Shown here in pieces: positions 34,147-48,223 of a DNA stretch of 63,926 bases (position 1 is the first letter of the stretch; the number at the start of each line of letters is the position of its first letter). This stretch comes from Vitrella brassicaformis CCMP3155 (lineage: Eukaryota; Protista; Chromerida): NCBI GenBank assembly GCA_001179505.1, contig CDMY01000123.1:62075-126000 (forward strand). Reading direction: 5' to 3'. The notes under the pieces were generated by a model. That model did not search any database, was not told the DNA's origin, and worked only from the letters and a program-made list of their open reading frames with translations. The translations under genes were made by a program, and so were the position numbers.

Positions 34147-37100
34147 TCAGTCGTCCTCCATCTTGACCCTAACCTCCCCCTCCCCCTCGCCCTCTGTCTT
34201 CACTCTCGCCTCTTTCTTCTCCGCCTTCTTCTCCGCTGCTGGTGGCTGCTTAACAATCCTCGGGCCCACACCCACACCCCTGTGGCTGTCGCACATCCTC
34301 TTCTGCCTGTCCAGCAGCTCAAGCACCTTCGCAGGCACCGCAAGCCGCTCCTCTCTTTGGTGCTGGTGGTGGTGGTTCTGATCCTCTCCTTGGTGCTGTG
34401 TCTGTGTGAGTGTCTCGTCTTTGATGGCCGCATGCTCCTCGGCCTTGTGCTCGATCTTCTGGCGCTTCACCAGGGGGCTGCCCGAGCGGTCCAGCACCAT
34501 GGCGTCGGGCCAGAACCTGACACACAGACAAGGCACACACAAGATGTATGGATTGGGTTTGGGAGTTCTGCCTGACTGACGGACCAGTGCATCTTCTTGA
34601 GTGCGTTTTCCTTGGAGCATTCTAGCATGAGAGCCTGGTCGGGTACGCGCCGCTCGGGGGGGCGGCACTCGATGCCCAACGCGGCGAAGATCTCCTCCTC
34701 TGCACCACACATCAATCAGGACACACAGTAACTATCCCATACAGACCGACAGACAGACAGATGGATGGAGGATGTGTGTGTGCGCACCTGACTCGCATGG
34801 GATGACCTGGCCCTGCCAGATCTGATGACAAAGCGGGAAGAGACACACAGGCATATGGTTGGTTGATTGCCAGGCCAGCAGTGTGTGTGTTGCAGGGTGT
34901 GGTGTGTGTGTGGTGACGACCTTGTCCTGCGCTGCGCGCCGGTTGCCCTGCACACCCACCACACAGACACGCACACGCACACACATGGATGCGTTCGTTC
35001 TCGGTGCCACAGGAGTGCGTGCGCACCGGTCTATGGTCGGCCTTTCGTTTGCTGTCCCTCATGGCTTTGCAGAGCTTGTGCTCAGACAGGTGCAGACCCA
35101 TGTGGATGGCATGCTGCCGAATCACACGGTTGAAGTGCCCACTGCCTGCACACAAAAACACACAGACACACACACAGAGAGAGAGAGAGAGATGGATGGA
35201 CAGACCACACCATGGTGGTCTGTCTTTCGGCTGGCCGACCGACCGCACCGGTGAAGTGGACGAGGGCGAAGGGAAACTCAGATCGGTGCCACATCTGGAT
35301 GGACAACAAGGACACGCCGTCTCACAAAACCACTCATTCCTGCCTGCGCGGTCTCTCACAGCAGTTCCTCGTGTGTGGTTGCTTGCCTTGATGTCTATTC
35401 GTCGCTTGGGCCCCGATCGGTCCGGCCAGCACACACCCAAAAACGTGACAGACGGATGGCCGGGGTCCTCTGCACACACACACACACACACACACACAGA
35501 AATGGACCACTCACGCAAAAGTGCGTGTGTGTTGTGCTCTTGTGTGTGTGGTTGTGTGTAACCGGGGTGTGGGATGCCGCCCTGGACGGCTTTCCCCTTG
35601 TCAGGCTCCGACATGCTCAGCGTGTCGACGATGAACCCCTCGCCCGACAAACTGGTCAATCAGCCAACAGTGAGTGACAAGACGCGCTAATTGGTGGTGA
35701 ATCGATTGCCATCGGTGCCACCGACCTGTCGAGGATTCGCTGCACCTCAGTGCCCACCTCCCGGTCGTCCGTTCGTGTGACGAGTATGTCGATGTCGCCC
35801 AGGTGCGTCTCGCCCCGTCTGTGGCTGCCGCACAGCTCGAGATGCAGCTCTCCCGGCAAGAGCTCGGCCGCCTTTTCACACACCCGCTGGTAGATGCTCT
35901 CCACCTCTGCCCGCGTCATCTTGAGGGCAAAGTCGTCGACGTACTTGAGACACCGCCGCTGTCTGTCGGTGTCCAGCGCCTCTGGGTGTTTCTTGATGTC
36001 GTCGAGGGTGCGGAAGCCGCGGGCCCACAGCCTGCCGGCCATGGAGGGGCCGACCCCCCAGATCTGGCAGAAAGACCGCAGCGCCTGCAGGCGCTCGTCT
36101 TTCTGCACACACGGACGGGAAGACGATATATGGGTTGGCGGAGGGAGGGAGAGAGGGGAGTGTGGTGTGATGGTTGTTGCTGTGGTGGGTGGCTTCGTGT
36201 GTGTACTTTGAAGTTGTTGAGGCGTTGGAGCTTGCCTGTGTCGAGCAGCTCCTGCACCTGAATATATAATCAATCAGCACACAACAGACAGCACCCACAG
36301 CCACACTTGCGCAGAGAGCCCCACCCGGGAGGCAGCGCTCCCGAGCACACCTGCTCACCAGCCTACCTTCTCGCGCACTCTGGGGCCGATTCCTTGCTGG
36401 CCGGCTGCAGAGCAGAGAAGACGTGACACACAGGGGATGAATGGTGGACGCTATGGTATGGTGTGAAGCCTAGTGGCTGACTGACTGACCGATGTCGTCA
36501 GCTGACAAGATGGGCTTGTCCAACCCAGCGATGAACTTTGCAGCCCTCGAGTAGGTGTAACTGATGGCACAGAGCACACACACGTCCCGTGTGTCTCTTT
36601 CTGCCTCCTGTGCTTTGCTTACTGCCGCCATTGGTCGCTAGAGGCCTTGTACCCCTTCGACAGCTCAGTGAAGTGCTGCACATACACACACACATACGCA
36701 CAGAAACAGAGCCATGTTTGTCCATCATCACTATCTTTGAGCGTTCACCCACCTCTGCCATCCACTTGTTCCTCTCCAGCGAGGGCTTGGTGTAGTCGAC
36801 GGTGCCGTCCTCTCCGCCCTCAATCATGAGCTCCTCACCATCCTCACCAAGACCGAAGCCCTCACCCACGTGTGGCTCCATCGCCAGCTCGTCTTCCGGC
36901 TCCTGCTTGACCACCGGATGTGGCTGCTGCTGCTGCTGCTGCTGAGGGAGAGGGGGAGGGGGAGTCGTGTGGCTGTCGGAGCCACCACTGGCCGCAGCAG
37001 ATCTAGAGGCGGACGAGGGCGCGCTTGGCGCGCTCTCGGTGAACTGATACAGGTAGGCTGAATACACACACAAAGAAAGGCGTGCAGACGGGGGGTTGCA

Positions 37101-37777: not shown

Positions 37778-39904
37778 ATGCAGTTTGTGGGATCTTTGTC
37801 GGCGTGCTTGCTGTCACTCATTGTCGGTGGCTGTGAGGCCTTTGCAGCCACGCAGGTACTTAGGCACACTCCGCCTGCACTGCATTAATTCACTTCCGTA
37901 GCCAGTCACTGCACGTGAGCCCATCTTGTGTGATGGTCTCTCTCGTCAGGTGCCGGTGCTGGCCTCCCCATCTGTCACCGCTGCAACGCCCAAGAAGAAA
38001 CCGGTGTGTGCCAATCACTGCCATCCCACGCATCACACACACATATTTATTTGCTGCCATCCCATCTGTATTGCTTGTCTGCTTTGCCCTGCACGTACGT
38101 ATGTGTTCATTTAGACAATTCTGGTGACAGGCGCTACGGGGCGGACAGGCAAGGAGGTCGTGGCCAACCTCATCAAAAGATACAGACAGGTACACACACG
38201 AGGCAAGGCGAGGCAGCCGATCCATGCAGTGCAGGTGGGCTGTCTGTCTGTCTGTCTGTGTTCATTTCATTCGTTTGTCCCACACACGCACACGTAGGAT
38301 GAGGTGACTGTTCGTGTGGGTGCGCGAGATGTCAAGAAGGCCGAGCAGATGTTTTCTGACGTCAGCGACCGGGTGGAGATCGTTCAGTGTGACCTGTTGA
38401 ATGAAGGCAGCATCAACAAGGCGACCAGCGGTGTGGATAAAGTTGTCTGGGCGGCGACGGGATTCTCTCAACAGCAGTCTCTGCTGGACCGTGTGTTCTC
38501 CCTCATTCGCTTCGCAACGAGCCCGAAAACTACCGTCGAGGTGAGCAGAGCAGACAGCGAGGGCACCATCACACGTAGCGTTGCCGCTGTTGTATGTATG
38601 TATGTATGTATGTTTGTGTGTGCATGTGATGTGCAGGTGGAAGGGATCCAGAAGCTTGTGCAAGCGCTCAAGCAGCAGAGGGACGGCCGCAAGGAGCAAG
38701 ATGACGGTACGGTATGAGTGTACCCTGTTCGTTCGAACAGACAGACACCTGCCGGCCCACACAGCCAGCCACTTGTGTGTTTTTCTGTGTGTGCTGGCCT
38801 GGTTGGCTCGGCTCGGCTCGTTTCAGGTCTGCCTGCTTTTGTCATGATGTCGTCAGCAGCCCTCACTCGGCCCTTCTGGGATGAAGCTGAGAAGGAGAAG
38901 TTCGTGGAAGTGACCGACATTCCTATCGTCAAGCTCAATCCATTCAACATCCTGGGTGAGGGAGGCCAGTGATGCCTCTATGTGTGTGTATATATGTCGC
39001 TGGCTGTTTGGCAGGGACGAAGCTCGAGGGTGAGAACGTCTTGCGGAAGAGCGGGGTGCCCTACTGCATTGTACGGCCATGTGGCTTAAACGATGCCCAT
39101 AAGCGGGGCCGGCCGGTCCTCGTGCAAGGTGAGGGGGAACAGCACACAGCCAAGCACACACACACCATTTAATTACTTACATGAGTGTCTGCAGGTGACG
39201 TGGCGATCGGGCGCATCAACAGGTATACATACGCACACACACATTTCCTGTGTGAAGAAACTGTCTTCCATGAATACATACATCGGTTCCTTCACCGCAG
39301 GAAGGATGCGGCGGAGGTTGTGTGTTCGGTGTTGGAGTGCCCGGAGGCTACCGGCAAGACATTCGAAGTCTTCACAATCCCCTTGTACAAGAAGAGCCCT
39401 CAGGTCATCATATATGTGAACAGACAGACAGGACCCACCTCACCTCCACGGGCACATATCTGTGTGTGTTCAGACCTTCAAGAAGACGCTAGAGGGACTG
39501 AAAAGGGACTCACCCGACTGGCAAGATGATGTGGGAAGCAAGGTGAGTGGCCAACCAGGCCGCTCGCACACGCCAGAAACTTGTACGCAAATGCATGCAC
39601 GCCCTCCTTTGCCTGTCTGCCTGAGGAATGCAGGTTGTGAGTGACGAGCTTTATGAGTTTCTTCGCCAGCTCCAGCCCAACCCACAACCGAGAAACGTCG
39701 ACCAGGGGAGCCTCAGGCAAAGTACGTCCTTCTCGCAGATCTTCCATCTCTGCTCTGCCGCATACCCTGTGTGTGTGTGTGTGTGTGTGTGGGTTCCGTG
39801 CAGGCGATGAGGAGCCAGAGGAAGACGAGGGTGTGAAGGCCGATGCGGTGCAGCAGAAGGAGCGAGTAGAGAGGCAGGATCGCATAGTAGCCGCCGTCAG
39901 ATGA
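37778..39904 (+). CDS. Plastid-targeted NAD(P)-binding Rossmann-fold protein (atypical SDR, TIC62/NmrA-like)
   Basis: Signal peptide ending ..GCEA|F (Phe+1, typical of bipartite targeting to red complex plastids), ILVTGATGRTG, KLEGENVLRKSGVPYCIVRPCGL and GRINRKDAAEV. TGA at 39902-39904. Confidence 0.85.
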
Positions 39905-40055: not shown

Positions 40056-43000
40056 TCAAAGCGCAATCACCTCCTCTGTACGGAAACTCACAGAAGGCTG
40101 ATCACATGTATCTAAAGCTTTATCACCTCCGTATGTGTTTTCTTCTTGTGATTCGACTCTCGCTGCTGCTGCTGCTGCTGCACGGGGGTGGCAGAATTTG
40201 CTCTCTCGGCCTCTGTCCGCTTGATCGACGCCAGAACCTCGCCGAGTATATTCTTCAGAGCATTGTCCACCTTTGCAAAGGGGACAGAATCCTGAAACAC
40301 ACAAAGAAGCTCGTCTCTCTGGCCGTTCTACAGCTGTGCTGACCTCTGGCCTGGTCCCGGCAAGCTTGATGACCTCATTCCAGACATGTTGGGCGACTCT
40401 CGCGGCGTACGGATGCTCTCGATCGTCAGGCCGAGGCACGATGAATATGTCAAAGAACAGCTAACAACAGCAACCAACACACATACGTGGATTTCGTGTA
40501 GATGGCGACAGACAGATACCTGTCTGTTGATTCTGTGTCCATCTGTCGCATTGTTCCCCTTCTCCCTCTGCCGTCCACTCTCAGGTATCCCGGCTCCAGC
40601 CGCCAAGAGCCCGACAGGCTGACAAACTTAGTGTCGTATGTCTCCTTGTTCGACGGCTGCTTCGGCGGTTCTTGCATAGCTTTTGGAGCAGCTGCAGCTT
40701 GGGCCGCCTGAGAGGCAGGCGAGAGAGAAGCTATGCAGGTAGGCAGGCGAGCATCAATCAAGTGCGTGCTTGTTACCGCGGGGTGTTTGCGTTTCTTGTC
40801 GTCTCTCTTGGGGCGGGGCGGTGGTGTCGGCGGCCGTTCTGTGACGCCGCGGTCGGACGGCTCACGCGCGCTGAGCTTCTTCTGCTCTGTCACTGCCTTG
40901 GCCTGCTGCTCGGTAGTCAGCTTCTCTTGCCTTGTCGGTAGGGGTGCCACGGACGCGAATTTCAGCAAGTGCAGGAGCTACAAGTCGACACGGGCGCGTG
41001 CTAGTGAGGTGCTGACAGCGGATTTGAACTTCTGCCAGTCGCTGTCGCCGATGCCGTCACAATATGCCTCTATCGATGTCAGCTCTTGATGCAGCGACGG
41101 CGCATTGAACTTGCACGCCTGATGACCAAGAGAAACAGGAAGACACGATTGAGCTGTATGACCTCGCTCTTGCCTTGAGTTTTTCCTTCAGATTGTCGAG
41201 GACTGTGGCAGCGCTGGCGACCGACTGTTGTTGTCTGCGTGAAATGGTGTGCCACAAAATTGAGAGTAGCAGCTGGAGGAGTTCAACCACCACCTGACGA
41301 GCGCAGACAACGGATACACCAAAGAACGCTCACGGCTCCTGCAGCCTGTCTCACCGTGCCAGTGTTCCGTTGATTAGCGGGGCTCTTGAGCTTGACTGCG
41401 TTGGCCATTAGTTGCGTCTTGCCCTTCTGCGAATTGAGATGGGACACCTAGCTTCTCAAACGGTCGTTGTCGGCTGCACCGGTGGTAAATAGAAGTAGAA
41501 AGGGTGAAAGAGGATGTAGTATACGCCAAGGGTGAGACGCTATTTGTCTGTGCACTCACCTCTGACTCGCTGCTCTTCAGTCTCTTTCTGCTTGATTGCT
41601 TTTTCTCTTCGCTGTCTGTGGCAGGCGCACATGGCCAGATGCAATGAATGCGAGCGCCAAGTGGGGTAAGATTCTCACTCTTGTGCGAGCTCAGGAACCT
41701 TGTGTCTCATCGCCGTGTCCCTTGCAGCCAAAAACCTCCTAACCTCGTCAAAGGCATCGCCCTGCATTTTGTCGATCTTGTTGCGCGACACACACACACA
41801 TTCGCAAGATAATGAGTGCATCGATCGACGATCCGCCCGACTTGAGGGCGGACGCAAACTCACCTTGCTGAGAAGTCTCTTGGTTTGCGCGGCAGTGAGT
41901 GGCTGTTTGTCAAGCTTGAGCAACATCGTGTCGATCACACGCCTGCAGGGCCTGGCCTTCGTATCGAAGCCCAGGGCATACTCAAGTGCATTCGTGCCTT
42001 CTTGCCATTTCACGTGCTGATCCGGCCACACACGATGTCCCATAATAGATGGCATCTGCGACAGGGGAAAGACAATACGAAATGACGTGATTTGTATCCC
42101 ATGCACACATGCGGGTGACCTTGTCGATCAGAGCCAGGAGGATACGATGCAGATTGTTGTTCCCACAGTCGTGGAGACAGTGGTAGATGGTGTAGGTCAA
42201 GAGAGTGAAGAGGCGAGATGATGTTCGGAGGGCAACAAAGCGGCGCTTGGACTGCAAGGACGTAATGTCAATTGATGATAAACCTTTTGCAAGTTCCTCA
42301 GCGATCTGCACCCCACATGCCGCGATTCAAATGTCTGCAGCCTCGTCGAGTCGTGCCAGCTTTACCCGATACTGTTTTGTCTCCACAGCGAGCACAAAGA
42401 GGGGCATCAGCATCCGAGATGGAGGTCGGCCTAGCGCTTGTATCTCTCTCACCCACAAGTCCTCGTTGCTTTCTATCAGCCGAAGCAGAAGCCCCGTGTT
42501 GGATGGCTCATCGCCATATCTGCGTGCCAGTAACTCATCGCTTGGCCTTATGTCAAGGTCCAATGAGGATGGAAGGGACTGGGGGTTGATGTAGGGTAAG
42601 CGCATGTCATCCACAATAGCAAAGGAGAGATCGGAACGTGACTGAGAAGTCGCCACCATTTCAAGCCATCCTAACCAGGAAGCCGCACATGCCGATAATG
42701 AACAAGCTTCCTCTCACTCGTACCTTTTTGACCACAAGGAAGTGGACAATCTCAGCTGCCTTTTCCTTGACGGCTTCGCTCAAAAGCTTTGTACCACCGG
42801 GGTAGCAGGGCTGGGAAAAACCAAGTAATTGGCCACATGCGTTGTCCAATCAATGACGTCCGCGTGCACGGTTTCGTCTTACCCTGAATTGTATAGTGAA
42901 GACGTGACTGTAGGGGCTGTCTAAGAAGGTACGGACTAGTTCTGGGCTCCTTTGAGCAATTGCATAGCATAAAGCGGTGCGGCCCAGTGAGTCTCTGAGT

Positions 43001-44488
43001 TGCATGTATTCGTCTCTGGCTGAAGAAATGCGGCCGAGATTGTTCAAGAGGATCTTCAGCGATGCCACATTATCGGACTCCATCGCCGCCAAATGAAGAA
43101 TCGGCTGAGAGCAGGACAGAGCCATTTACAGAGAAGCCATGCAGATCCAAAATCCGTGACATCGTGTCGTACCCGTGTCAACCGTGATGGTGCAAGAGGG
43201 TCTTGCGCTGAGTCTTTGTAGATGTGCTCTGCCACCTTGTTGAGAAGGTTGTGCGCCTTGACAAAGGAGAACAGCTCCGAGAGAAGCTGCACACATTTAA
43301 AAAAGTGCCCGCCCATGAAGGCCATCAAATATACAACATACATACTTGTGCGTTGCCCGTCTTGACAGCAAGATGAAAAACATTCCACTTCTTCGGGTCC
43401 TGCTGAGTGAGAATCCGTTCGATGCGCGACTTCGGCTCTTTGGCCAACAGAGTCAGCAAATGTCGCACAATATCGATATTCTCTAGTTCGACTGCCATGC
43501 AAACAACAGAGCAGCGCTGTTTAGCTGCAGTGTAATGCACTTTGAAGTGCAGGCCCGTGTCTCTTGCATCTTTCTGACCGGCGATCATCAGTGAGTTTCG
43601 TGACGTGTTTCGTGGAAGCTCTTGAAAGGGGTCTGCTTTGTATTCGTCTACCATGATTTTCACGACATCTAGATCGCCGCCATGAATGGCGTATTGAACT
43701 GAAGTCTTGACCTCCTGGTTGACTTCCTGCTTTAGGCCCTCGTTTTTCATGACTTTTTGCACAACTAAAGCATCGCTTTGCTGCAGTAAGGTGATGAGCC
43801 GCACTTTCCCTCCCTTTGCTGATTGGAGAATGGCGGCCACCATTTGTGCATTGCCTTTTCTGACCAAACAAGGACGTAGCAAGGAAGAGAAAAATTGAAT
43901 GATCCCCAGAAGCTTTCTTTGTACTGCGCAGCGAAGATGAGGGGGACACACAGAATCTCCATGCTGTCCGCACGAGACGGATACTGTTTCTTCGTTTCAG
44001 ACAGCAAGAGCTCAAAGATGGCTGCCTGCTGGCCCGTTGTTCCCATTGCGCAGTACGTCAGGGCATTGTGGATGTTGTTCGTCTCAGAAGGCTCGATGTT
44101 TTGGATAGGGTTAGATCCTTCGGCAAGCAGGAATCTTACAACCTCCACATTTCCGGAGGCTGCACTCACCATACAGACGTATGCGGTATGGTCAGACATC
44201 GGTCAACCGAGCTGTCAACCGTCGAAGACGGCCACCTGTCTCTCAATCGCTTACCTGCAGCTTTCATGACTGCGGTTTCCTTGGTCTGCTTGTCTTCTTC
44301 CCTCAGACGGCCCGCAAACAGCTCAGCGCATATCCCAGTGATCTTTGCTTTGATGTTAGAGTCAATGTTACGACGGCCGTTGGTGGTCTCCAAGAAGCAG
44401 AGGTCGTTGTAAGCGCTGCTGATCCATCGTAGTGCATCCAAATTGTCCTTTTCGGACGCGAGAATATGCAGCGGCTGCCTTGACACAT
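40056..44488 (-). CDS. Ankyrin-repeat region plus C-terminal exons; probably the 3' part of the same gene as the upstream papain-family protease
   Basis: Spliced ankyrin repeats: TAVMKAAASGNVEVVRFLLAEG, PLIFAAQKGNAQMVAAIL, SVQYAIHGGDLDVVKIMV, NVFHLAVKTGNAQ, PILHLAAMESDNVASLKILL and GRTALCYAIAQRSPELVRTFL. The 3' end is ambiguous: TGA at 41456-41458, or continuation to TGA at 40056-40058. Confidence 0.7.
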
Positions 44489-44538
44489 CTGCATGTCATA
44501 TCACACATAACGTCACTTACTAAATGATGCAGATGCAA

Positions 44539-47500
44539 TTATGTGCATATTTTTGTTTGCCAACCCTCAATTGTGGGCACATCAGCTACAGACAAAGAGA
44601 CAGTGGGAGACACACAGACACCCATGCATGATGGAAGGTCATCTTTGCTTTTGGTCTCTTACCAAAGAGCGCCTCACGAATGTCAAATATGGACATGAGG
44701 TTCTTCAGGCGAGCACTTTCTTGGTTGTCTGCCTTTCTCTTCGATTCAATGATGTCCTGCATCTCATCGTAGAGCAGACGCCTCCTGAAAATACCATCAC
44801 AGGAGACAAGAAAAGGTATGCAATGCAGAGGTGCTTTCTTACGCTGGCTGCAACCATAGGCGCTTGTCCAATTCGACATTCTGATGAGATGTAACAGCTT
44901 TGGCAACCTTCATTAGAGGACTTAGTCCTTCCAACATGTCTCGACAGCTCTCTTCAAGCGTCTTGCCTCGAATGTCCTTCAAGTCGAGGTAAGACGGCGG
45001 GGTGAAGTACCATTCGAAAGTCTTCAAAGCCTGCTCGGAGCCCTCGAAGCTGACTTGGACACGAAACAAAAGCTGAGAAAGCAAAATACAACAATCCATT
45101 ATCATACAAGGACCTTTTTCTGTTCTCTACCCGTCCGTCGGCCTTGCTCCGGACAGCCAAAGCCTGCATTTCGCTAAGACAAAGCTCCATATCGATGCTG
45201 GTGCAGAAAACGGCTCCTTTTGCACAGCCCAACGGCTTGGGCTGTGTCTCTAGTGGCTTGAAGTTTTTGTCAAAGTCGAGATTATATGCTGGCTGCAAGA
45301 CAAGAGCAGAGAGAAGCAATGCAAGTAAACACCCGCTTGTAAAGCATGATGGGGTCGCATCTGACCTGCATCTTTGCCGACCGCACTTGGCAGTTCCGTG
45401 TGCACTTGATCTGGGAAAGGGAGAGAGGCGATCATGTGTGCAAAAATCACCGAATACTGACGCGTCAGTTTTCGTGCGCTTACATTGATTGTTAGCAGGT
45501 CACCCTTCCCTTCACACGAAGTAGGTGCCGTCTGAATGAAGATAAATTGCTGATCCCACATAGCTTGAGGCGATAAGGGCGGCGGTACAGCACTGGCTTT
45601 TGTCGGTTCTTGTGCCGCAAGTTGTGCGTACAAGTACTGAAGTGGTGAATGACAGTGATGCCGGATCTCCGTTTTCTATCACTTGGCGGCACCCCTTTGC
45701 CTCTGCCTCTTACCTTGACAGAAGATTCGATCCCACATTCGTCGCGACCTTTCACTATGTAAAAATACCTGTGGGAAAGGCACCACACACAAGAGGGTAA
45801 GCCCTGCGATGAGTAAGCACATACAGACATAGTTCATCATGAAATCTCACCCCCGCTGCCCCCATTGTGGACCCTGATAATGTACAGGCAGGCGCAGATG
45901 AGTGATGTGAGCATATGGCATGCACAATGGTGTCTTTCTTCTCACCCAACTGTTGCGCACGATCCAGTAAGGCGTGCTCCCCTCGCCCCATCCAACAATG
46001 ACAACTGCATGACTTGAAGTAAGCGGAGACACACGGTCCCATTCATAGATCCCGCTGCGATATCGTTGAAAGTCCGTATGATGGTCTATTGCAGCATAAA
46101 CCGGGCCATATTTGTACAGCTGAATGACACACGAAGTGCACGGCCAGTTCATAAAAGCGTTTACGGTTTACCTGCAGCTGAATGCACTTGCAGACGTCCT
46201 CATGCCTTAAGTGTCTCTTAAGGGAGGCGTCATAGTTGCGAATAGATGGGCAACTGAAATAGGGGGCTTCGTGCTTTGGGTCGGCTCGGCCTTGCTTGAC
46301 AAGCGCTGGTACACTGACGGGTCTCCACAGTCGCTTGATATGGGCGTCGTCAGGACATTCAGGCATCGCTTTGCTACAGATACAGGCGTCTGTGTATGTG
46401 CATAGACTTGCAGACAACGTGACGATACTTACGAGGCACTTTTGCATATTTCCCCCCAAGCTGGTTGTCCACCATTTCCGCACGAAAGACGGTACGGCAT
46501 GTCTTCCTCTGGCAAGGCATGAGGGACGTAATTGACGATGTGATCCTGTCATGAAATCAAAGCTTACCCAGGGCAGCGCATGCTGATGCGTACCGCTCGA
46601 AAGCAACGTGTGGGTTACCTGCAGAGACACAGAGCGACCACAGTGACAACCTTGCATTTATGACATGCATGATTTCCACCCGCTGACCTCCATTGCAGTG
46701 CTTGGTGATACACCTCACGAGATCTTGAGGCGAGAATGTAAGGCGATGTGATCCGTCAGCTTGCTGCCTAAGCATCGTCTGTTTGCTTTTCTTGCCAGCC
46801 GCGAGCTGCTGCAACTCAAGCACACAGACGCGGTTTGCGAAGACAGATGCTGCGGTAAAAGCCCAACACACGCCGCATTCCCCCTGATTCTGTGGGAGCT
46901 GATTTGGTCGAGCCTTGAAGCACGCGTGCCACGGGTGGTCTGCCTTCAGTGGATTCCATTCTTTCGGAACCTTGTCATTGAAGCCCACTCTCTCAATCGA
47001 ATAGTCAACGACAAAAAATTCTGTCGTATTGGTGGATCCCAGCGTAGATAAAAAGGACTGCTTTTGGGGCCCTGTGTCTCCTGATTTTCCGTACAGAAGC
47101 TGGTCGTAGTGTTTGTGTGCATCGAAGGCAGAGTCGCTCCAGAGATGGCTGCACAGCTCGATTGTATCGGGCAATGTCTCCTGACAGTAGAACTCTTCGT
47201 CACACTTAGCGGTGCCTCGGCACTTGAAAGCAGCAGTGCTCCCTCGAGCTTTGCATATGATACCCTCTTGCTGCCTCTGCGAGCATCGGAAGTCCCATTG
47301 TGCGATAGGTGCTGACTTATCATCAGACGGTAGAAGCGCATATACACGCTGAAAAGAGCCTGTCCCTCCTCCACATCCTTTGCCCCTGTGAGACAGCTGG
47401 AGGTCGAGCTGCACTTCTGTCCCCTCCGGCACTGCTCGAACCAAAGCACCGAGAACATTCTGCTCACTGATGCTGATCCGTTTTCCAGGGCACTCCTTTG

Positions 47501-48223
47501 TGACTCGCTCGAAATAGCCGTTGACCGCCCTGAGTGCGTCGGCGACAAGCGCTTCCCTGCGGGGCAGAGGAATGGGCGCATCTTCCCTCTCGAGGTGGAT
47601 GCTCTCCGCCGGTGGGAAAACGTCGTCAAGCAGGCATAAAATCCCCGTTCGATTTCCACGATATTGGCATCATTCTTCTCGGTCATTTTCTTCTCGATGA
47701 ACGCCATGACGATGTCGTCATGGGTCTTGCGGTTGAGTGATTCGTCCTCAGCTGCCGCGACACTGCGCTCCGAGGGCCGAAGAAGCACGTACAGCTCCCC
47801 TCCCGTCGACTCAATTGCCAGAGTGCCCTCGTCCGTCTCACGTATTGTCTCAGTGACTTTTTGTCTTGAAGAGGGGCAGTAGATGACGTGCAGAAAGTCC
47901 ACGTCCTCCGCGTCGACGGGGCCCAGCAGACTGCCCTCAGCCGTTCTCTTCAAGTTGATCAGAGAGAGCGCGTGGAAGAATGCCTCTCGGACGCCCCTCT
48001 CTTTGCCTTTCTCCCACAGCGACTGGGGAGTATCACCTCGAGTATCACTGCCCTCGTTTGGAAACCATACTTGCACGTCGTCGGCCTTGCATTTGAGGTC
48101 GACTCCTGTAAGTCGTTCGAGATGGGCCAGCAACTCAAAGGCGTTTGGTAACGGCTGCTCTGGCTGCTGAGTGCCGATTGCTTGTGAAGAAAGCAGAAGG
48201 CCTGCGAAGAGGGCCAGCATCAT
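44539..48223 (-). CDS. Secreted papain-family (C1A, cathepsin B/C-like) cysteine protease with long N-terminal region and C-terminal extension
   Basis: Signal peptide MMLALFAGLLLSSQAIG, QNQGECGVCWAF (oxyanion Gln, catalytic Cys ~46866), LYKYGPVYAAI, SHAVVIVGWG (His ~46010), YWIVRNSWG (Asn ~45953) and GYFYIVKGRDECGIES, joined by canonical GT-AG introns. One frame change around 47500-47670 needs an intron whose donor is not obvious. Confidence 0.85.

Follow-up and report, generated by a model that had tools for sequence, protein, structure and literature searches.

Can a papain-family protease preceded by an apparent signal peptide and an array of ankyrin repeats, which are usually cytosolic binding modules, be parts of one and the same protein chain? 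The question is raised by a minus-strand locus of the photosynthetic apicomplexan relative Vitrella brassicaformis, which lies between positions 48223 and 40056 of the window analysed here, a stretch of 63,926 nucleotides (nt) of genomic DNA (C123:62075-126000). An earlier inspection of the letters alone, referred to below as the sequence-only reading, had proposed a single gene that fuses signal peptide, protease and ankyrin array. Our results favour a single gene, split into at least 24 exons on the minus strand and with two paralogues elsewhere in the genome, whose fused product would be a secretory zymogen with the ankyrin array as its substrate or partner arm; for this explanation as a whole we put the probability at roughly 0.7. 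As modelled, the encoded protein would begin with a putative signal peptide, continue through an orphan N-terminal region (about 420 residues) into a cathepsin-B-like C1A protease, and then carry a conserved linker of about 245 residues, some ten ankyrin repeats and a further tail. Both kinds of component are known, while the fusion of a C1A protease, with its orphan N-terminal region, to a C-terminal ankyrin array appears to be new.

The join between protease and ankyrin array is carried by assembled RNA. One contig of run X6, called X6 below, is 7397 nt long, matches the locus at 99% identity or better and has every intron cut out, from which its derivation from RNA follows, although none of the runs is recorded as RNA; two further runs (X4 and X5) are unspliced DNA, identical to the window letter for letter. 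X6 covers 48126-46686 without a gap and from there to 42366 leaves out introns bounded by GT..AG, or CT..AC as read on the plus strand. Protease, linker and ankyrin exons are joined in it at 21 GT-AG introns with zero mismatching letters, 16 of the joints being read directly and the remaining 5 of the 21 inferred from the contig's own numbering. These five lie between 46687 and 45874 as frame-keeping GT-AG introns (46687-46619, 46567-46509, 46432-46374, 46171-46120 and 45945-45874), and with them in place the exons together account for exactly the 526 nt left by the contig numbering. Over all junctions the spliced sequence reads through 1245 codons without a stop.

The sequence-only reading had held that the cathepsin-like domain runs on past ECGIESSVK by way of a donor at 45713 spliced to 45636, that the donor at 44662 and the acceptor before 44488 are used, and that the link to the ankyrin exon may pass through a mini-exon at 44585. 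Across 45636-45714 and 44488-44663, the two places at which it had looked to RNA mapping for an answer, X6 contains the predicted splices. Introns 45713-45637, 44662-44586 and 44564-44489 are removed to give the joints 45636|45714, 44585|44663 and 44488|44565, all GT..AG on the minus strand, and the 21-nt mini-exon 44585-44565 is included, spliced on both sides. As the mini-exon is shorter than the word of the Logan assembler, which we take to be 31 letters, both of its junctions should have shared single reads. Three junctions within the ankyrin region are repeated in X1, a run from a different study. The need of the ankyrin exon at 44488 for an upstream exon was also rightly foreseen: an in-frame TGA precedes 44486 by four codons, and the first methionine comes about 74 codons into the exon.

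The protease domain begins within exon 1b (47556-46688), which carries the rest of the orphan N-terminal region, the start of the mature protease (VPKEWNP at 46970), a Gln for the oxyanion hole (46886-46884) and the catalytic Cys (TGT, 46868-46866, within QGECGVCWAF). Six exons spanning 46618 to 45714 follow (46618-46568, 46508-46433, 46373-46172, 46119-45946, 45873-45851 and 45768-45714), and they hold the catalytic His (46011-46009, SSHAVVIVGWG) and Asn (45954-45952, VRNSWG). The catalytic set is complete, and the intact C1A triad claimed from the letters is upheld. Pfam and solved-structure scans were made exon by exon throughout, with the joined reading used for frame, hydropathy and paralogue comparison. 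Peptidase_C1 (PF00112) scores 59.5 bits at 45847-46152, 57.6 bits on exon 46119-45946 and 30.1 bits on the Cys region, where the Pfam cut-off is 20.7 bits. We assign the domain to the papain family (MEROPS C1A) and predict it to be proteolytically active. By sequence, its best solved-structure matches are cathepsin B (1csb, 1huc, 1pbh) and cathepsin L (2o6x); cathepsin B is the top solved match of the Cys region and stands second to one cathepsin L for the His/Asn exon.

With cathepsin B and other C1A peptidases the domain shares the Gln, Cys, His and Asn residues, the motifs QGxCGxCWAF and NSWG, the CNGG motif, which is present here, and a mature N-terminus of the form P.E(W/F)...W..C. It differs from them in three respects. 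An orphan N-terminal region of about 420 residues stands ahead of it, and the Pfam scans match neither an I29 nor a Propeptide_C1 prodomain. No His-His pair of an occluding loop is found on reading the loop region. Finally, the catalytic domain is followed by the 245-residue linker and some ten ankyrin repeats. The protease is therefore probably better described as cathepsin-B-like than as a cathepsin B.

The 245-residue linker (45636-44565) is spread over six exons, 45636-45484, 45410-45366, 45292-45131, 45072-44843, 44784-44663 and the mini-exon 44585-44565, with all junctions present in X6; the exon-by-exon scan gave it no Pfam family match. The ankyrin array occupies seven exons between 44488 and 42724 (44488-44255, 44159-43925, 43859-43579, 43491-43346, 43286-43173, 43104-42883 and 42810-42724), again with their junctions in X6. 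About ten tandem repeats can be counted there by reading, several of which are split by introns and individually fall under the cut-off. Ank_2 (PF12796) reaches 32.3, 27.9 and 27.5 bits over a cut-off of 27.3, and Ank (PF00023) 24.9, 23.9 and 23.2 bits over a cut-off of 21.1. The profile scan for Peptidase_C1 and Ank that the sequence-only reading had proposed thus finds both above their cut-offs.

The same domain order recurs elsewhere in the genome. A search of the 72.7-Mb assembly (1064 contigs) matches the N-terminal parts of the gene to two further loci, one on contig C316 (C316:21300-31299, plus strand) and one on contig C391 (C391:47000-62072, minus strand), each with a signal-like N-terminus, an orphan N-terminal region, a cathepsin-B-like protease, a linker and ankyrin repeats. 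In each paralogue a single long open reading frame (ORF) holds both the signal-like N-terminus and the same orphan N-terminal region. Both are colinear with the window gene through the protease, with ankyrin repeats downstream (Ank 36.9 bits in C316; Ank_2 31.3 bits in C391). The C316 locus bears most directly on the join, with a single open frame of 404 codons that runs from the end of the protease (WGDKGHFRVRRGANEAGIEEGTTYIYPDKL) through the linker to the first ankyrin repeat (PPLHYAARHGKVPLIKWIV). This frame aligns with the spliced product over the 45714/45636 junction (CGIESSVK|YLYAQL) and also across exons 11-14, where the distance from L..(V/I)F to WI is 44 residues in both genes, by reading and with the mini-exon counted. 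The linker, from which all ankyrin residues were left out, gives a local score of 62 with its C316 counterpart; shuffled sequences give 32 ± 4.7 with a maximum of 57, and 0 of 1000 reach the observed value. The domain order shared by C316 and C391 indicates that the fusion predates the duplication and is a family trait. The fusion is an inherited architecture of a three-gene family, not a product of read-through, and the claim that protease and ankyrin array are one gene, with no separate ankyrin transcript needed, is borne out by X6 together with the two colinear paralogues. This conservation is not supported for the tail beyond the array, where tblastx of 42700-37000 against the paralogue loci gave no match at 1e-3.

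Several points weigh against one gene with one productive fused chain. Ankyrin repeats are usually found in the cytosol, and the role of the array in recruiting substrates is one that we infer. The RNA contigs show the presence of a form and not its proportion, which leaves the productive form of the transcript as a candidate. The protease frame has no ATG ahead of the catalytic Cys, and X6 keeps the 65 nt at 47621-47557, whose removal is required to connect the signal-peptide frame with the protease frame; the unbroken frame from signal peptide to protease that the sequence-only reading implied is thus not the one seen in RNA. X6 further uses a 53-nt intron after the array (42723-42671) that leads the frame into a TAA at 42550-42548.

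The first of these frame breaks lies within the orphan N-terminal region. The ATG at 48223 has an in-frame TGA immediately upstream, and its ORF opens with MMLALFAGLLLSSQAIG, a putative signal peptide (48223-48173) by the reading of its hydrophobic N-terminus; both paralogues begin alike. Exon 1a (48223-47622) comprises this segment and the first part of the orphan N-terminal region. It has a coding score of +39.8, with -44 and -40 in the other frames, shares homology with the N-terminal ends of both paralogues, and has no family match in the Pfam scan. The frame from the ATG ends at a stop at 46946, its second half scoring as non-coding (-24), and the protease frame opens after a TGA at 47669-47667. 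Removal of 47621-47557 as a GT..AG intron joins ...GFYACLTT to EALVADAL... in frame.

The second break follows the ankyrin array, in an alternative acceptor region with its next exon (42723-42366), the exon starting at 42670 or 42641 and ending at 42366. Besides the 53-nt intron seen in RNA, an 82-nt alternative (42723-42642) is available, which shares the donor, has its acceptor at 42642 and lets the frame continue without a stop through 42641-42366. The scores of the two acceptors are near equal (1.9 and 2.3). In the frame set by the 82-nt intron the exon scores +9.1 and has no stops, the other frames scoring -20 and -19 with 6 and 4 stops. With both frame-keeping splices in place, 1586 codons are open from 48223 to 41862. 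A single unbroken frame from start to stop does not occur in the observed RNA; canonical frame-keeping splices exist but are absent from X6. As X6 carries two frame-breaking splice choices, a large share of the transcripts may be non-productive, or the gene copy itself may be partly disabled.

Of the explanations that compete with ours, the one that survives best takes up this last point. It holds that the copy is transcribed but disabled, either because the 65 nt are coding and a real one-base frame break lies near 47640-47628 or because non-productive splicing dominates, so that full-length protein is scarce or absent and the function falls to the paralogues. Retention of the 65 nt in X6 fits this explanation, as does the second frame-breaking splice in the same contig. 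The segment also makes a poor intron by several measures. In the protease frame its score is that of coding sequence (+6.1), no known intron of the gene is as rich in G+C (0.65), the donor GTTTTC has a score of -3.1, which 174 of 197 exonic GTs equal or exceed, and neither paralogue has an intron at this place. Other observations argue against disablement. With the 65 nt removed, the peptide fits C316, the closest paralogue, much better, with a global score of 53 against 20 for the frame-shifted version and a matching length (90 against 92 residues). The acceptor, scoring 5.5, is as good as true ones, and only 4 of 316 exonic AGs reach that value. The downstream frame, open for more than 1200 codons, and the clean splicing of the 21 other introns speak against old decay. 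No canonical slippery heptamer for -1 frameshifting was seen on reading 47640-47628. For the 65 nt themselves we lean modestly towards a weakly spliced intron, at slightly better than even, with a true frame break in this copy given about a third of our confidence. That the copy as a whole is disabled we regard as unlikely, though it has to be taken seriously, and we continue to favour a gene that yields the fused chain.

If the fused chain is made, in which compartment would protease and ankyrin array reside? A hydrophobic N-terminus is seen by reading in all three paralogues. Past it, no 19-residue window exceeds a Kyte-Doolittle value of 1.6, the maximum of 1.45 falling on the active-site helix, and this absence of a further transmembrane segment places protease and ankyrin array in the same compartment, provided that the N-terminus is a signal peptide. 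For secretion, as claimed by the sequence-only reading, there speaks the hydrophobic segment, which this gene has in common with both paralogues, whereas in X6 that segment and the protease lie in separate frames. We regard secretion as plausible from these N-termini. On the model favoured here the protein would enter the secretory pathway as a soluble zymogen, and the ankyrin array would be an arm for binding other proteins, by which the protease is supplied with particular substrates or with an anchoring partner.

An alternative accepts the same fused protein and gives the array a different task, that of holding the protease's own active site shut, as a latch or built-in inhibitor, in place of recruiting substrates. 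Designed ankyrin repeat proteins are reported to be able to bind and inhibit cathepsin B (PMC5562217). Neither an I29 nor a cathepsin B propeptide was detected, so that some other control of latency is plausible. This line of argument is indirect, and the usual position of the prodomain is occupied by the long orphan N-terminal region; we consider a latch quite improbable and retain the recruiting arm as the proposed function.

The sequence-only reading had further called the architecture effector- or toxin-like, for which we find no support: neither a host-targeting motif nor a relative with known function speaks for it, nor does any expression context. Ankyrin effectors secreted by intracellular bacteria and poxviruses are protein-binding modules delivered outside the cytosol of the producer. 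The Vitrella proteins would resemble them in having ankyrin repeats outside the producer's cytosol, a placement that is putative here. Such effectors are, to our knowledge, not fused to a C1A protease, and no evidence points to delivery into another cell by this alga.

The orphan N-terminal region itself has yielded little to structural comparison. An AlphaFold2 model of 313 residues from a three-row alignment, with a mean predicted local distance difference test (pLDDT) value of 31 and a predicted template-modelling (pTM) score of 0.20, is too poor for use. The ESM Atlas look-alikes of the 313-residue piece are generic Peptidase_C1 clusters at 0.83 only, with nothing for the N-terminal region.

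Searching 1.84 billion representative proteins with the 313-residue exon that holds the N-terminal region and the catalytic Cys gave five matches (P0001 to P0005), none of which is a full-length model of this gene. P0002 models it in 248 residues, which cover no more than part of the 5' end. After ...NDANI the model jumps to QLAAGKK..., taking out about 860 nt (window 46806-47663, minus strand) as one 'intron' and with it the catalytic Cys, and its end runs into the intron that follows 46568; the X6 RNA contig does not support this gene model. P0001, with 550 residues, models the C316 paralogue and ends within the protease domain. The other three matches are weak. P0003 (721 residues) and P0005 (740 residues) are long cathepsin-B-like proteins with Peptidase_C1 as their only Pfam domain, and P0004 has 687 residues. 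P0003 and P0005 resemble the Vitrella family in combining a signal-like N-terminus, a long N-terminal extension and a complete Peptidase_C1 domain. They differ from it in that their extensions are unrelated and that they end directly after the protease, with no ankyrin repeats. The database models found for the family are fragments of 248 and 550 residues, and domain surveys based on them would miss the fusion; the 248-residue model skips even the catalytic Cys. In the literature searched, nothing was found on fusions of C1 proteases with ankyrin repeats or on this gene.

The restriction of P0002 to part of the 5' end is what can be said for two independent products, a protease transcript and an ankyrin transcript with the joined contig as occasional read-through, an explanation that we judge highly improbable given the in-frame stop just upstream of the ankyrin exon at 44488 and the lack of an early ATG in it, the splicing of the mini-exon on both sides in RNA, the single open frame of C316 from the end of the protease through the linker to the first repeat, and the conservation of the linker.

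Downstream of the array the gene is less well delimited by RNA. The start of the 3' part (42305-40056) at 42305 is taken from RNA, following an intron at 42365-42306, and its downstream portion and the stop at 40056 are predicted; it has no Pfam family match. A dynamic programme combining splice and coding scores was rejected as a 3' gene model because it was too permissive, splicing round every stop and running past 40056 through the stretch of a convergent gene. That gene (38304-39529, plus strand) is NmrA-like, with a match to the NAD(P)H-binding family PF13460 at 26.1 bits, just below the cut-off of 27.2, and it sets a limit to the protease-ankyrin gene on the 3' side, where the end is expected between 40056 and about 39550. 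X6 extends 3020 nt beyond its aligned stretch, and this extra sequence may run into the convergent gene. Short (CA)n/(GT)n microsatellites on the minus strand occur in the predicted 3' part (39765-39790 and 41795-41810), and runs like them are found in neighbouring ORFs. Further along the window lies a gene for a family X DNA polymerase (35656-36273, minus strand), with matches to the DNA polymerase lambda fingers at 51 bits and the DNA polymerase beta palm at 45 bits.

At its furthest, our interpretation would see in the three paralogues a small private family of secretory-pathway cathepsins whose ankyrin arrays give a broad protease a chosen target, each acting as an exported or organelle-delivered enzyme of processing or attack, or latching itself; we hold this extended proposal to be rather improbable. 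If the protein is made as modelled, ankyrin repeats and a secretory-type cathepsin would share the same soluble chain in three paralogues of a photosynthetic relative of the apicomplexans. It would then represent a natural case of a broad lysosomal-type protease that has been given a specific binding arm, with possible relevance to the ways in which the secretory proteases of this lineage acquire specificity.

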